Position numbers and translations under genes: made by a program
Shown here: one piece after another, positions 9,000 through 39,817 of the stretch
Position numbering within the stretch: the first letter of the stretch is position 1
How the letters are laid out: the number at the start of each line of letters is the position of its first letter
Notes under the pieces: model-generated
What the model saw: the letters and a program-made list of their open reading frames with translations, nothing else
Databases searched by the model: none
Told to the model about the DNA's origin: nothing
Origin: Adineta vaga
Lineage: Eukaryota; Animalia; Rotifera
DNA: 64,000 nucleotides
Reading direction: 5' to 3'
NCBI GenBank assembly: GCA_021613535.1
Contig: CP075493.1
Span: 1,798,001-1,862,000 of the forward strand

Positions 9000-9356
9000 A
9001 TGTCGAACTCTTTTGAAACAATCGATGCTGCTAATCGTCATTTTGAAGAACTTTTTAATGCAGGAAAATTTGATGAATTAGTTGCACTTTATACATCTGA
9101 TGGAAAACTTTGTCCACCGGATAAGAAGAAATATGAAGGACGAGAAGAAATTAAAAACTTTTGGCAAGGTGCTCGTGCTGCTGGAGTTAATAACTTACGT
9201 TTAACCACAGGGACCGTTTTAGAAGCCGGAACAGATCGATTGATTGAAACAAGTTCATATCAACATTCATTAGATCGCGGAAATTATCAAGTCATATGGA
9301 AACGTGTTGGAGAAGGGCAAAATCAATGGCAATTAGAAATTGATATTTTCAATTGA
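9000..9356 (+). CDS. Intronless NTF2-like SnoaL/DUF4440 (ketosteroid-isomerase-like) protein, HGT candidate
   Basis: 118-aa ORF with IDAANRHFEELFNAG..LVALYTSDGKLCPP..GREEIKNFW..GNYQVIWKR..WQLEIDIFN, the pattern of bacterial DUF4440 proteins. AATAAA lies just after the stop. Confidence 0.8.
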   Translation: MSNSFETIDAANRHFEELFNAGKFDELVALYTSDGKLCPPDKKKYEGREEIKNFWQGARAAGVNNLRLTTGTVLEAGTDRLIETSSYQHSLDRGNYQVIWKRVGEGQNQWQLEIDIFN

Positions 9357-19165: not shown

Positions 19166-20128
19166 ATGTCTGCTACTGTCATATCCATTGATTTTCTCTG
19201 TCTGATTTTTATATTCTCTGGTTATCAGATACAATCTGCAGAAGTTCCGTACGATACTGTCGTCTGTTTTGGTGATTCTCATTCTGATACTGGTAATGTT
19301 TATAATTTATCAGAATTCAAATGGCCTCCTGTTCCACCTTACTATCAAGGAAGATTCTCCAATGGACCGATATGGATCGAAAAATTAGGCATATCAACTT
19401 TGATTAATTATGCATATGGTGGTGCAACAACTGATAATACGTTAGTAACAGGTGTGACAATGACAAGTAATATCGTTCCTGGTGTTCGTCAACAGATATC
19501 AACATATAAAAATCTAACTGATTTAACTAAAATTAATTTTAATCGAACACTTTATGTCATTTGGGCTGGTTCTAATGATTATTTTTTCAATATAAATTTA
19601 TCTCCATATATCGTTGTTAATAGTCTTACGAATAGTATTGATGATTTAATACAAATCGGTGCGAAACATTTTCTTATTTTTAATGAACCACCCTTTGAAG
19701 TTTATCCGTATGTTATGATGTTAAATATGAGTATCTATATGAAGGCATTAACATTAGCACATAATAATAACCTTTCAAATATCATTCAATCAACATATCG
19801 AAATATTACTTGTCATTTCTACGATACACATTCTCTTATTACAAATATTCTTAATAATCCTTTGAAATATGGAATAAATTCGACGAAAAATTGTTGTTGG
19901 AATACATTATCTGGTATTGTTAATATTTCATGTACAACTACAGATACGTATTTATTTATTGATGAATATCATTTCACTACTCGTATACATCAATTTATTG
20001 CTGATAATGTTCGACAATTATTTTCCACATCAAATAAAACTACGAAACATTTTCATTCAATATCGATTCTTTTATGGTATATCTGTAGTTCGATTGTTTG
20101 TCTTTGGAAAAAGTATTGTTGTATGTAG
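19166..20128 (+). CDS. Intronless secreted GDSL/SGNH lipase/esterase, HGT candidate
   Basis: Signal peptide; block I FGDSHSDTGN; GRFSNGPIW; block II NYAYGGA; block III IWAGSNDY; block V FIDEYHFT. Confidence 0.9.
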   Translation: MSATVISIDFLCLIFIFSGYQIQSAEVPYDTVVCFGDSHSDTGNVYNLSEFKWPPVPPYYQGRFSNGPIWIEKLGISTLINYAYGGATTDNTLVTGVTMTSNIVPGVRQQISTYKNLTDLTKINFNRTLYVIWAGSNDYFFNINLSPYIVVNSLTNSIDDLIQIGAKHFLIFNEPPFEVYPYVMMLNMSIYMKALTLAHNNNLSNIIQSTYRNITCHFYDTHSLITNILNNPLKYGINSTKNCCWNTLSGIVNISCTTTDTYLFIDEYHFTTRIHQFIADNVRQLFSTSNKTTKHFHSISILLWYICSSIVCLWKKYCCM

Positions 20129-31112: not shown

Positions 31113-33726
31113 ATGTTAATGAGTGAAAACAGCTCATTGAATTGGACATCTTCTATTCCCAAAAATGTCACGACAAGTACGATTACCAATCGTGAACAAA
31201 TTCTTATTGATGGATTTAATACTTATATACAAATTGGAATTGGTAGTCTTCTATTTCTCTTTGGTTTAACATTTAATTGTTTAAGTTTACTTTATTTTTG
31301 TGTTTCAAGAAGTTTTCGAAATACAACATTTCGACTTTATTTTTCAATTATTGCAATACTTGATACCATACGTTTATTTGAATTCTTAGTATTTATTTTA
31401 TTTGATAAAGGTTATCTTAAAGTTACATTAACATTATGTCGCTCAGTATTTTTTACCATTATGTTTACTGGACAGGTAATTTTCTAAATGCTATTTCCAG
31501 AATCAGTAAAGTGCTTCTATTTTTCTTCCTTTGACTTAAAATGGCATACCATTATGCATTGACGTATGTTGATGAAAAAAAAACAAGAACTTTCGTATTA
31601 TCGATTAGATTTTATTCTAGTTCGATAAACAAATTTAAATAGATTTGCTAACATTCACTCACACACATCTGGGAATGTTTATACTTTCGAAAAAAAAAAG
31701 AAAATAATCGTAAAACTATTTATCATATATATATAAATAAATAGTTTTATCATATTATTCTCATTATTTATCCGAAATAGAGCGATCGTTAAAAAATTTA
31801 TCATGTAAATTTTATTAGACGCGTGAAAGTCTCATTAATTTTTCTTTTTTCCTTATTGTACTAGAACATCAACGTCATGATTAAATAGAAACGATGAACA
31901 TATCGACATATAATGAGTAGATCTATATACAAAACTATAACAAGTGATGATAAAGGCAATTTGTTGAGTTTATTCAACTAACATAGAACAAATTATATTG
32001 AAGTGATGTACTTTAAAACAAAGATAACATTGTTGAAGAGACTACGTCATTAAAACCATGAATGTGTTCCTCTTGATTCAATGTCATACATACTTTTCTC
32101 GATGTATGTGATGACAAAAAAAAAGACTAAGAAAACAAGACAATATCGTTTTGTCTTTATAATAAGAACAAAAAAAGACAATGACAAAGAATATTGAAAA
32201 GACTTTTCTATAGATCAAACAAATATGATTTGTTTTTCTATTCTTCTTTCTCTATAGGCAAGTATATGGTTAACAGTTGCATTAGCAATTGAAAAATGTG
32301 TTATTATTTGGTTTCCAATCAAAGGACGTTTATGTTTTACAATGACAATTTCAAAAATTGTACTTATCTTTGTTCTTTGTCTTGTTTTCTTTGCTAATGT
32401 TATCTATCTTCTTCCAACATTTTTCTCTCATACATATGAAAATATGTCCATTCATACATTTATGTGTGTTTGGCATAAAGGTAGTCAAACATCAACAAAT
32501 CGTTATGATCAATGGAAAAAACATTATTTAACATTTAATACCGTGTTTTTTTATTCAATTATTCCATCAATTATATTATTAATTGTTAATTGGTTGATTT
32601 TATATAGTCTATCACGTCACCGAGTTAATTTATCGAAAATTGGTTCTATTGATGCAAAAAATGTTTTGAAACGTGAAAAACAATTTAAAGAAAAAACGAT
32701 TCAATTGGTTCTATCTTCATTCTTTGTTATTATTACTATTTCACCACGATATATTTTAACAATGGTCAATGCATTTGCTACTAATCTTAGTAAAACACCA
32801 TTAATGCCATTATATATTTATGTTAATTTAAATACAGTTTTTCGAGTTTTGGAAATGTCAAATTTTTCATTGAATATTATCTTTGCAATATTAAGGTAAA
32901 TTTTTTCTATTCAAAGTTTTTTCCAAGCAAACAACTTTATTTATTTCTTAGTGGTCAAACATCACGTTTAGAAATTCGTAAAATTCTTTGGGAATGTTTA
33001 TTTTGGCGATTTAAACGAACACAATCCGATCGTAGTACAACCAAATATCCAGCACATGCATTTATTTTCACTGATGATGATGAAGATACAGATCGATCTG
33101 TACAAATTCAAGGTACACCTTATTCTGGATTGAATCTTCGTCAAAATAATAATAATTTATCACCAAAATTAAGTAGTGGCAATTATTCATTTCAATTATC
33201 GCAAACATCAAATTCAACATCAGTTTTCAATTGTTGTGGTTTTAGTATTGATTTATCCAATAAAAATTCACATATGTCACATTCAAAAATATTTCTTGAT
33301 GAATCATCATCACGACGTTCATTCAATAATGTAACTTCAAATAAAATATTAGCAAAAACAGCTTCTTATCCTCAATCAAAAGCTTCCTCTCCAAATGATT
33401 GTTTACTACGACCACAAAAAACTGTATGTTATCGATCGACAAATGTACCACGACCAATAACAAGACGTCGAGCAACAACTCTTGTACAAGCTCGACGTAA
33501 TACACCAGCATCAATTAAAACAACATTAACAACAACAGTTTATCCGTCAATATTACAAGAAAATCAATATCTAGCATCTGAAAAACTACCTTCAATTATT
33601 GATATACCTTCAACAACAAAAGAAGAAAGTAACATAGATCTAATTGCATCACCTGACCCTTCACTTCCCATTTCAACCGATTGTAATGAACCACTTTTAC
33701 CAGCCTATATTATAGAAACATGTTGA
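31113..33726 (+). CDS. Class A (rhodopsin-like) orphan peptide-type GPCR with a long C-tail, 3 coding exons
   Basis: TM1 GLTFNCLS; TM2 YFSIIAILD; TM3 Q|ASIWLTVALAIEK..FP; TM5 YSIIPSIILLIVN; TM6 FFVIITISP; TM7 SNFSLNIIF. Confidence 0.85.
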
Positions 33727-34351
33727 TTTTCTTGTATTTTTTAAAAAATTATCTGTATACTTTTGCATAGTTACTAAACAACGATCTAGATAGATAAAAA
33801 TGAACTGTAATGAGAAATCAAGATCAAAAACCAGGGATACCGGAAGATGATGTAGGTTATAATTTTGTTTTATTCTTGTTGTTTAAAGATAATCGGAAGA
33901 AATCTGTGGTAAGTAGTTCGTTGTTAATCTTCTTTTCTATTGAAATTCATTACGAAGAAACTCGGAAAATAAAGTTTCATTCTCGATATTTCATTTTATA
34001 TAAGATTTGATGAAACATTAAGGAAAAATAAGCTTAAATTTTCTTTCTCGTTTACATAAAACAGGCGACAGAAAGAAAATCCTTTAATACCAGTCTATCA
34101 TCGGAATTAATGAGTGTAACGAAGCATTTCTAAGTGCTCTCTGTCTTTGTTGTAATCATATTACGTATATGACAATCATGTTTTTTTTTCTTTCATAGAT
34201 TATTTTGAAAAGAAATCTATGAACATCTTCTACTCGTTTAGAACGAATTTTATTAAAATGGATCAGAAAAACAAAATCAAGAAATCATCATGTTTTCAAT
34301 CGAAACTAAAACTAAATCATAGGAGATGAGTTTTTTCGCGATCAGATTTAT

Positions 34352-35820
34352 TTATTTATTTGTTGAATGTCCTTTAGTTGCATCACCTTCTGTATAAGCA
34401 CGACTAACAACTTTGCCTTTATCAACAATCAAATATTCTTCACGTTGTGGTCGATCATTCAGCCAATTACCAAGAATTTCTTGAACACCAGTTGCATAAC
34501 GTGCTTGAGCATCTAACGTTGTACCTGAATAGTGTGGGGTCATTGCATGTCGTGGCATTGAACGCCATGGGTGATCTTTTGCTGCTGGCTATAGAACAAA
34601 ACTAATCTAGATATACAATTATTCGTATTCAATCTTACTTGTGGATACCAAACATCACCAGCATAACCTTCGATATGATTTGATTTAATAGCATCAACTA
34701 ATGCATCACGATCCATGATCTTTCCACGTGCTGTATTAACAATATAACTACCTTTTTTCATTAACGATAACATTTTTTTGTTGAACATATGTTCCGTTTC
34801 TGGATGTAATGGACAATTAATTGTAACAACATCACATGCTTTAACTAATGATTCAACATTGGAATGATATGTTACATTAAGATCTTTTTCAATCGATTTA
34901 TCTAAACGAAATTTATCATAATAATGTAAATGAACATTGAATGGTTTAAGACGTTGTAAAACACGAAGACCAATTCTTCCAGCTGCAACTGTACCAACAT
35001 GTTTATTTTCTAAATCATATGCTTTATCAGCTATTCTTGCAATATCCCATTCACCATTGACAACTTGCTAAATAATATGTAAAAGAGAAATTTAATTTTT
35101 CGATTTATTCATTCATTTTCATTTACTTTATATGCTGGAATAAAATTTCGTACAAGAGCCAAAATCTGCATAACTACATGTTCAGCAACACTAACAACAT
35201 TTGAACCTGAGACTTCCGCTATATAGAAAAAAAACCAAAACAAATTTTCATTGAATATCTTCAATAAATTCCGACATACATACCGACAGTAATACCTAGA
35301 AGAAAGAAACAAGTTATTATTTTGTTTTTTATTTCTCAAAAAACATACCTTGTTTACAAGCAGCTTCTAAATTAACATGATCAGAACCGACACCAGCTGT
35401 AATTGCTAATTTTAATTTTTTAGCTTTGTCAATTCGTGTTTGATCGAGATAACATGGCCAAAATGGTTGAGATATAACTACACTTGCTTCTGGTAAGGTT
35501 TTTTCAGCAAGAGAATTTTCACCTTGTTTATCCGATGTAACAACTAATTTTAGACGATCTTCAAGTTTATTAGCTTTAATCCATTCTGGTAAACCTAACG
35601 CATTTTCAACACATCCTAAAATTTTCTTATTTTTCTTTCCAGCTTCACCACCTTTAAAATAAAGAAATTATTTCGAATCTATCCTATTCATTCAAATCAA
35701 ACCTTCATAAAGTACAACTAAAACTGTATGTTGACCATTATTTGTCGATGCATAACGTGCCGATAATAATAAAGAATTCTTATTATTCAAGAAGCTTTTT
35801 TTAATGATCTTACTTAACAT
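34352..35820 (-). CDS. FDH: NAD-dependent formate dehydrogenase (396 aa, 6 exons) with an N-terminal mitochondrial-type presequence
   Basis: Exons 35820-35703, 35651-35349, 35295-35284, 35218-35127, 35067-34639 and 34588-34352 join in frame (1191 nt). Motifs: [84 protein letters not shown]. Confidence 0.95.
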
Positions 35821-35922
35821 GAATGTACCCAGTCAATAAAGAAAGAGAAAAGTAATATGTGAAGTGAAAGTGTGTCTACAGATAGATATAGGTCAACTGA
35901 TCGAGTTTATTTTTCTCTTCTC

Positions 35923-36462
35923 TTATCTATATTTCGATAAACTTAACAAACAATAAACGAAAAGCAAAGAAAGAAAAGATACTGTTTTGATTTGATATGA
36001 TGAATTAATCGATGATGTCGATAGATGAATTCGTTTTAATGATAAAGAAGTTGTAGTTTGAAAATGATTTGTAAGACAATATAATGGATCATTTTGTTCA
36101 ATTCTTTCTAAATTTATTTCACAATATCCATGTTGAATTGATATATGAAAATAAATTGAACGAAAATGATCTTTAAAATAATCTTCTTGACAATTCATTT
36201 TCATATAATCATATAAACAACATAATGTTTCACGAATTTTAATGCAACGAAATGATTTTTCATCACAATTATATGAATTACAAAGAAGATGTTTTTGACA
36301 TTGTCGAGGAATATAATATAAATCTTGATTGATTGATATATTTCTACAATAATTTGATTTTTCCAATGTAAAATTTGTATCAATATCAATTAAATAATAG
36401 GAATTTAATGAGAAACTTGTAATTATTTGAATTGATATACAAAAAATGAAATAATCAATCAT
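35923..36462 (-). CDS. Intronless Cys-rich secreted, possibly GPI-anchored orphan protein (179 aa)
   Basis: Hydrophobic N-terminus, Cys-rich core, Ser/Thr-rich stalk, hydrophobic C-terminus, and AATAAA just after the stop. Confidence 0.65.
   Translation of the reverse strand: MIDYFIFCISIQIITSFSLNSYYLIDIDTNFTLEKSNYCRNISINQDLYYIPRQCQKHLLCNSYNCDEKSFRCIKIRETLCCLYDYMKMNCQEDYFKDHFRSIYFHISIQHGYCEINLERIEQNDPLYCLTNHFQTTTSLSLKRIHLSTSSINSSYQIKTVSFLSLLFVYCLLSLSKYR

Positions 36463-37612: not shown

Positions 37613-39817
<2,205 letters not shown>

Follow-up and report, generated by a model that had tools for sequence, protein, structure and literature searches.

The metal-free, NAD+-dependent formate dehydrogenases (FDHs) are canonical enzymes with textbook chemistry. 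A review of the family defines the subfamily by a PF[HW]P loop, an Ile/Val residue, an NAD-selecting Asp and a His-Gln pair; it gives the enzyme for bacteria, fungi and plants only, reports no FDH with another physiological substrate, and puts the KM of known FDHs for formate at a weak 3-10 mM (PMC6303947). Plant mitochondrial FDHs (Arabidopsis, 3JTM; Physcomitrium, 7ARZ) have a presequence and a short N-terminal loop, an architecture shared by the fungal enzymes of Candida boidinii and Chaetomium.

Animals normally take one-carbon units to CO2 by way of ALDH1L1 and ALDH1L2, whose fold is unrelated to that of FDH. These enzymes use folate-bound formyl and yield NADPH. The net result is that of FDH: the formyl carbon leaves as CO2 and reducing power is recovered.

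Bdelloid rotifers are known for the abundance of their foreign genes. Adineta vaga has about 2,600 of them, 8.9% of its genes, and a protist-like origin accounts for 28.7% of bdelloid foreign transcripts (Eyres 2015, PMC4632278; for the system, Simion preprint, 10.1101/2020.06.16.155473). The ancient acquired enzymes described in these studies are intron-bearing, expressed and present in both Adineta and Rotaria. Here we describe an FDH gene that is likewise foreign and shares these properties; it differs from the others in that the host block around it is conserved and in that it may do the work of a core animal enzyme. UniRef already names most bdelloid copies formate dehydrogenase automatically. 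In the papers and supplements of the literature searched, FDH is named neither in rotifers nor in other animals, and what is new is an old, conserved, animal-encoded FDH. We think it likely that bdelloids possess a working enzyme, gained from a microbial eukaryote, that clears formate in mitochondria and is probably, in A. vaga, the main route from one-carbon units to CO2.

The window analyzed here is a stretch of 64,000 nucleotides at 1.80-1.86 Mb of contig 1 of the A. vaga assembly (GCA_021613535.1; 100.8 Mb, 6 contigs). The FDH gene, present in one copy in the genome, lies on its minus strand (Table 1). Its 6 exons join into 1191 nt, or 396 amino acids and a stop, and a frame check finds 0 internal stops. 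An intact 396-residue frame with the catalytic motifs of the family had been predicted, and it is there: N151 in GSNVV, D226 in YYDKF, R289 in NTARG, Q318 in WYPQP and H337 in TPHYSG. So are the 5 host-size introns, all GT..AG, 50-65 nt long and 17-24% GC. The coding sequence has 34% GC and 13% GC3; the window has about 29% GC. The window gene was searched exon by exon, and full-length database queries were made with relatives rather than with the joined model, which was used to check the frame, in local BLAST and in the tree and dN/dS calculations.

Table 1. Features of the FDH locus (positions are those of the window)
Feature	Position	Strand	Remarks
FDH exon 1	35703..35820	-	codons 1-39 + 1 nt; holds the presequence and the first part of the catalytic domain; intron 1 junction spliced in 2 runs
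Predicted mitochondrial presequence	35746..35820	-	residues 1-25, ends R-Y-A-S; 5 K/R, no D/E, moment 0.50
FDH intron 1	35652..35702	-	51 nt, phase 1; spliced contigs; same position in Rotaria
FDH exon 2	35349..35651	-	PFWP loop (102-105), V127; PRK07574 111 bits; PF00389
FDH intron 2	35296..35348	-	53 nt, phase 1; spliced contigs; same position in Rotaria
FDH exon 3	35284..35295	-	12-nt micro-exon; seen in 3 RNA-type runs; conserved in Rotaria
FDH intron 3	35219..35283	-	65 nt, phase 1; spliced contigs; same position in Rotaria
FDH exon 4	35127..35218	-	formate-binding N151; PRK07574 38 bits
FDH intron 4	35068..35126	-	59 nt, phase 0; spliced contigs; same position in Rotaria
FDH exon 5	34639..35067	-	Rossmann domain: AAGRIG, D226, R289, D313, Q318; PRK07574 234 bits; PF02826
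FDH intron 5	34589..34638	-	50 nt, phase 0; spliced contigs; same position in Rotaria
FDH exon 6	34352..34588	-	H337 in TPHYSG, C-terminus, stop; PRK07574 99 bits
Longest spliced FDH contig, 1371 nt	34228..35874	-	about 54 nt before ATG, 124 nt after stop
Upstream neighbor, 179-codon ORF	35923..36462	-	no Pfam match; beside FDH in other bdelloids; kept in contig 4 sister block
ATP synthase beta, host gene (approximate span)	37745..39817	-	synteny marker
Downstream convergent neighbor, GPCR-like by eye	31113..33726	+	no Pfam match per exon; synteny marker

The family assignment is supported by four exons. NCBIfam PRK07574 (FDH) is the best family for exons 2, 4, 5 and 6 separately, and for exon 5 the next family scores only 110 bits. 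The four exon scores add up to 482, which is a sum and not a whole-protein score; the curated whole-protein cut-off is 329 bits. When exon 5 is compared with the PDB, the best 30 matches are all formate dehydrogenases, and FDH structures are the best fold matches of the structure predicted for the A. steineri orthologue from a shallow alignment, with a mean pLDDT of 74.

The features that define the subfamily are present as well. The extended beta3-alpha3 loop carries P102-F103-W104-P105, and the Ile/Val of the beta4-alpha4 loop is V127 in AGVGSDH. A His-Gln pair (H337, Q318) replaces His-Glu; the formate ligands are R289 and N151, and these columns are invariant in the alignment. The NAD-selecting D226 aligns with D222 of Granulicella, the site of the D222A/S/Q variants. 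All of these elements, and the fold, are common to the FDHs of Pseudomonas sp. 101 (2NAC) and Granulicella (6T8C). Unlike these, the bdelloid enzyme is animal-encoded, with an N-terminal presequence and five introns in its gene; it has a short N-terminal loop, TPHYS instead of TPHIS, and a bdelloid-only insert of 4 residues near residue 70. Since the family review gives no FDH a physiological substrate other than formate, we strongly infer from the sequence that the gene product is a metal-free, NAD+-dependent FDH active on formate.

Is the protein mitochondrial? The 31 residues before the first strand include 5 Lys or Arg and 0 Asp or Glu, with a hydrophobic moment of 0.50, and the first acidic residue of the protein is at position 39. 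A basic, acid-free leader with Arg at -2 is typical of matrix presequences. The leaders of orthologues vary in sequence, yet they stay basic and acid-free and end in RYAS, a motif retained in 7/7 full-length orthologues tested. In the leader dN is 0.31-0.40, versus 0.05 in the mature part, and in the A. steineri model pLDDT is below 50 across residues 1-26. Cleavage is likely to follow Y23 (R-2 type), and the protein is probably imported into the matrix by a presequence of 23-25 residues. The earlier suggestion of a mitochondrial enzyme thus gains in weight, as a prediction from this amphipathic leader and its conserved end.

A second FDH gene of Rotaria sp. Silwood1 encodes 373 amino acids without a leader and has an in-frame stop just upstream. 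It has the same five introns, different neighbors and an altered nucleotide-binding motif, VVGTGRIG, and it branches first among the bdelloid copies. It is likely a cytosolic paralogue from an old duplication.

The gene is transcribed and spliced, as judged from assembled contigs of runs whose type we guessed to be RNA. Introns 4 and 5 are exactly removed in contigs from 3 such runs, each from a different study. The same 3 runs show introns 2-3 as one 125-nt joint with the letters of the micro-exon between its sides, and in 2 of them the contigs reach intron 1, which is also removed. Contigs from a fourth run are unspliced. These contigs attest presence and splicing; their depth is no measure of expression level or condition, and their ends do not mark transcript ends. 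The longest spliced contig starts 49 nt from the stop of the upstream ORF, and only about 100 nt (window 35821-35923) separate this stop from the FDH start. A promoter within the upstream neighbor, or trans-splicing, is possible.

The locus is embedded among host genes. ATP synthase beta, which the original prediction set about 2 kb away, does lie about 1.7-1.9 kb upstream, though not adjacent to FDH, as the 179-codon ORF intervenes. Two metagenome bdelloids and Rotaria sp. Silwood1 also have ATP synthase beta, the unknown ORF, FDH and the GPCR-like gene in this order; the neighbors differ for one copy in R. socialis. Contamination or an assembly artefact would have to account for a gene with host GC and host intron size between host genes on a chromosome-scale contig, for synteny conserved in independent assemblies and for spliced RNA-type contigs. 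We consider its likelihood negligible, in agreement with the earlier view.

How old is the gene? Orthologues occur in A. steineri (92% identity), A. ricciae (88%) and five Rotaria species (84-89%), with identities of 82-92% overall. All five intron positions and phases, the micro-exon included, are common to A. vaga and three Rotaria genes, and dN/dS of the mature part is 0.09-0.19. The bdelloid families are estimated to have diverged over 60 My ago (PMC4632278). Orthologues in Adineta and Rotaria with the same introns, mostly the same neighbors and low dN/dS therefore make the gene over about 60 My old; together with the spliced contigs, they bear out the description of an old and domesticated foreign gene. 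A break in one metagenome FDH contig was rejected as a further shared intron, being a frameshift-like duplication. The A. ricciae protein model has a gap of 13 residues just before the micro-exon and one R. socialis model is 20 residues longer, both probably annotation errors.

A. vaga is a six-chromosome paleotetraploid, and chromosomes 1 and 4 form one of its sister pairs. On contig 4 the sister block retains ATP synthase beta and both flanking genes, and no FDH remnant was found in its 2.4-kb gap. Only 40% of A. vaga genes keep a sister copy, so the absence of FDH from contig 4 does not date the gain: it fits a gene acquired after the tetraploidy as well as one whose sister copy was lost.

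Where did the gene come from? The earlier prediction implied a bacterial, fungal or plant donor. The nearest kin are instead protist and oomycete FDHs with presequences. The best full-length non-bdelloid matches listed, at 65-74% identity, come from Phytophthora, Flabellula, Leptophrys and foraminiferan transcriptomes and from many anonymous metatranscriptome or assembly sequences. Measured identities are 59-61% to full-length bacterial FDHs and 49-53% to plant and fungal ones.

Three types can be told apart in the alignment. Bacterial FDHs and that of Salpingoeca have a long N-terminal loop; plant and fungal FDHs have TPFHP; the third type combines a short loop with QPFW and TPHYS and holds the bdelloids with oomycete, amoebozoan and rhizarian FDHs. 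The A. vaga protein shares the short-loop eukaryotic architecture of the plant and fungal enzymes but has QPFWP, not TPFHP, and falls outside their clade, which is separate at 100/99. It has neither of two bacterial marks, the N-terminal loop of about 29 residues and the insert of 3 residues at the C-terminus. Phytophthora, Flabellula, Leptophrys and foraminiferan FDHs resemble it in short loop, QPFW, TPHYS and basic presequence. Leaders of this basic, acid-poor kind occur in 40/43 scorable TPHYS-type sequences, bdelloids included. The genomic examples examined from oomycetes, amoebozoans and rhizarians are intronless, in contrast to the five introns of the bdelloid gene, and two genomic contigs of the protist-type group have eukaryotic neighbors. 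The group as a whole is a large, unlabelled set of eukaryotic FDHs that bear a presequence and have QPFW and, in most cases, TPHYS, which sets it apart from the plant-fungal type. It goes unmentioned in the family review (PMC6303947), and the literature searched holds no characterized oomycete, amoebozoan or rhizarian member.

In all trees the bdelloid FDHs group together (99-100), and neither the plant-fungal nor the long-loop bacterial clade includes them. Their clade is supported at 100/100 and placed among protist sequences, where the backbone is poorly resolved. The 40- and 72-row trees omit fragments, near-duplicates and six long-branch sequences. AU tests on the 40-row LG+G4 tree, whose bootstrap had not quite settled, reject a grouping of bdelloids with fungi (p=0.0009) and with the choanoflagellate Salpingoeca (p=4e-52); they allow a sister-group relation between bdelloids and the bacterial clade (p=0.27). 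The claim of a transfer stands insofar as vertical grouping with these opisthokonts is rejected. Salpingoeca urceolata itself has an FDH of the long-loop bacterial type, with an N-terminal leader, which makes its acquisition separate from the bdelloid one.

Two other histories can be weighed against these data. A bacterial gene might have received its presequence and introns in the rotifer. QPFW is common to bdelloid and bacterial FDHs, bacterial structures outscore plant and fungal ones, and the AU test leaves the bacterial sister position standing. However, the bacterial loop and insert are missing, protist identities exceed bacterial ones, and no near kin turned up when 185,579 prokaryote genomes were searched for bdelloid-specific words. 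We regard a bacterial donor as highly improbable. No relative was found in viral contigs either.

Alternatively, there was no transfer: an old eukaryotic mitochondrial FDH descended vertically and was lost in most animals, or survives in small ones that have escaped sampling. The related group does span several eukaryote supergroups and has presequences, and most of its members are unlabelled metatranscriptome sequences; some of the anonymous close relatives could be other small animals. Against this, both opisthokont types sampled, fungal and choanoflagellate, are rejected as sisters. Among the 240 full-length matches listed, many of them anonymous, there is neither Brachionus nor any named non-bdelloid animal except one amphipod, in a Hirondellea UniRef entry at 58% identity. 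That entry has no contig on record and groups with a foraminiferan sequence at 100/99; it is most simply a passenger transcript. Vertical descent is thus very unlikely in our judgment. From the sequences compared, the gene was apparently gained before the Adineta/Rotaria split from a microbial eukaryote in which the enzyme was already mitochondrial.

What would such an enzyme do in an animal? ALDH1L (10-formyl-THF dehydrogenase) was not found in the A. vaga genome, the one genome covered, by domain, motif or ALDH-exon searches. The genes matched by PF00551 and PF02911 are limited to those for GART, MTFMT and a HypX-like protein. Three ad hoc ALDH1L motif patterns returned MTFMT, an HtrA protease match rejected as chance, and nothing, respectively. 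As a positive control, an ALDH2 exon scores 68-69 bits against the solved ALDH1L1; in the genome the same search gives two ALDH2 copies and otherwise only loci below 42 bits, which by motifs resemble ALDH1A/2, 3, 4, 5, 7 and 8 (one locus is ALDH4). The PF00171 search was scored for 12 of its 70 candidates, and one ALDH exon had no match in the PDB. Exon-wise searches lose sensitivity where introns split a motif, so we put the absence of ALDH1L no higher than highly probable. The genome has one trifunctional MTHFD1, the sole FTHFS gene, without a presequence, and an MTHFD2-like gene with one; it keeps two copies of GART, MTFMT and two copies of esterase D. Esterase D and MTHFD1 would be sources of formate. 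PurU and pyruvate formate-lyase were not found in the genome. With FTHFS leaderless and PurU missing, neither was a matrix enzyme that releases formate from 10-formyl-THF, and formate would thus have to reach FDH free.

We propose the following model. Before the lineages of Adineta and Rotaria parted, a bdelloid ancestor would have acquired FDH from a microbial eukaryote; the gene would since have become a normal spliced host gene. The precursor would enter the mitochondrial matrix by its presequence and be processed there. By direct hydride transfer from formate to NAD+, the enzyme would give CO2 and NADH, and the NADH would pass to complex I and the respiratory chain. In this way FDH would remove the free formate that comes from food, from folate overflow and from the detoxification of formaldehyde, and would regain the reducing power of that formate. 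Formate inhibits cytochrome oxidase; its removal would take away an inhibitor and recover energy from one-carbon waste. Since the searches gave no ALDH1L, FDH may take the place of the route that animals usually have and would then probably be the main exit of one-carbon units to CO2.

A second reading accounts for the same observations; the link to ALDH1L is the one point on which it departs from this model. The enzyme and the transfer are the same, and FDH would be an accessory detoxifier of dietary or microbial formate, ALDH1L having been missed or lost independently. One gene among about 2,600 foreign ones could well be of this kind; the high KM of the family (PMC6303947) fits bulk detoxification, no matrix formate-releasing enzyme was found, and putatively foreign formate/nitrite channels suggest exchange with outside formate. 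Strong purifying selection over more than 60 My and retention in every bdelloid genus seen speak against an accessory role, and several independent searches miss ALDH1L yet find MTFMT, GART and more than 10 other ALDH loci. We hold this reading to be quite possible, if short of probable.

The channels in question are two tandem intronless genes on contig 2 (15484967-15485713 and 15490174-15490920), of which one was scanned and lies above the TIGR00790 cut-off. To our knowledge, the formate/nitrite transporter family is unknown from animals. At 11529425-11532200 on contig 3, a HypX/HoxX-like gene with formyltransferase N and C domains and an enoyl-CoA hydratase domain precedes a FolD-type domain. 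A broader rewiring of the one-carbon end, in which bdelloids lost ALDH1L and came to rely on the protist-derived FDH together with foreign formate/nitrite channels and the HypX-FolD fusion, is conceivable but rather doubtful. On that reading bdelloids would be the first animals known to oxidize formate directly to CO2 and NADH, and a foreign gene would have replaced a core animal enzyme instead of merely adding a function.

It was also proposed that FDH serves in recovery from desiccation or hypoxia. In plants FDH is a mitochondrial enzyme of the stress response (PMC6303947), and bdelloids tolerate desiccation, so that by analogy the main role might be stress-specific. We found no support for this. 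R. magnacalcarata and R. socialis, non-desiccating species that live on an aquatic host, have an intact gene. The word 'formate' is absent from the supplements of A. vaga desiccation, spaceflight and pathogen transcriptomes, which possibly give gene ids only. The reaction needs free NAD+, and where NADH is already in excess, an NAD+-consuming enzyme is poor help. A primarily stress-specific role is therefore unlikely, and general formate clearance in the matrix, as is probably also the task of the plant mitochondrial enzymes, is the reading we prefer.

The bdelloid copy extends the range of FDH beyond the bacteria, fungi and plants of the family review (PMC6303947), and points to the transfer of a ready-made mitochondrial enzyme from a eukaryote to an animal. 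Should the loss of ALDH1L hold across bdelloids, these animals would offer a natural model of how formate is cleared independently of folate, and would put to the test whether core metabolism can be taken over by foreign genes. The large unstudied group of protist FDHs may contain catalysts for NADH regeneration.

Other genes of possible interest came to light in the same searches. Bicupin-like genes lie on contig 3 (4106742-4107904), contig 1 (15.18 Mb) and contig 6 (11.62-11.63 Mb). Their similarity to oxalate decarboxylase is weak and scores far below the cut-off, and they were not counted as a source of formate, which they could possibly be if active on oxalate. A small expansion of ALDH1A/2-like genes occupies contig 2 (6.816-6.824 Mb, three in tandem), contig 5 (11.34 Mb) and contig 1 (15.50 Mb). 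The window itself holds two further foreign-gene candidates, both intronless ORFs: one with a SnoaL-like domain (9000-9356) and one with a GDSL lipase domain (19166-20128).
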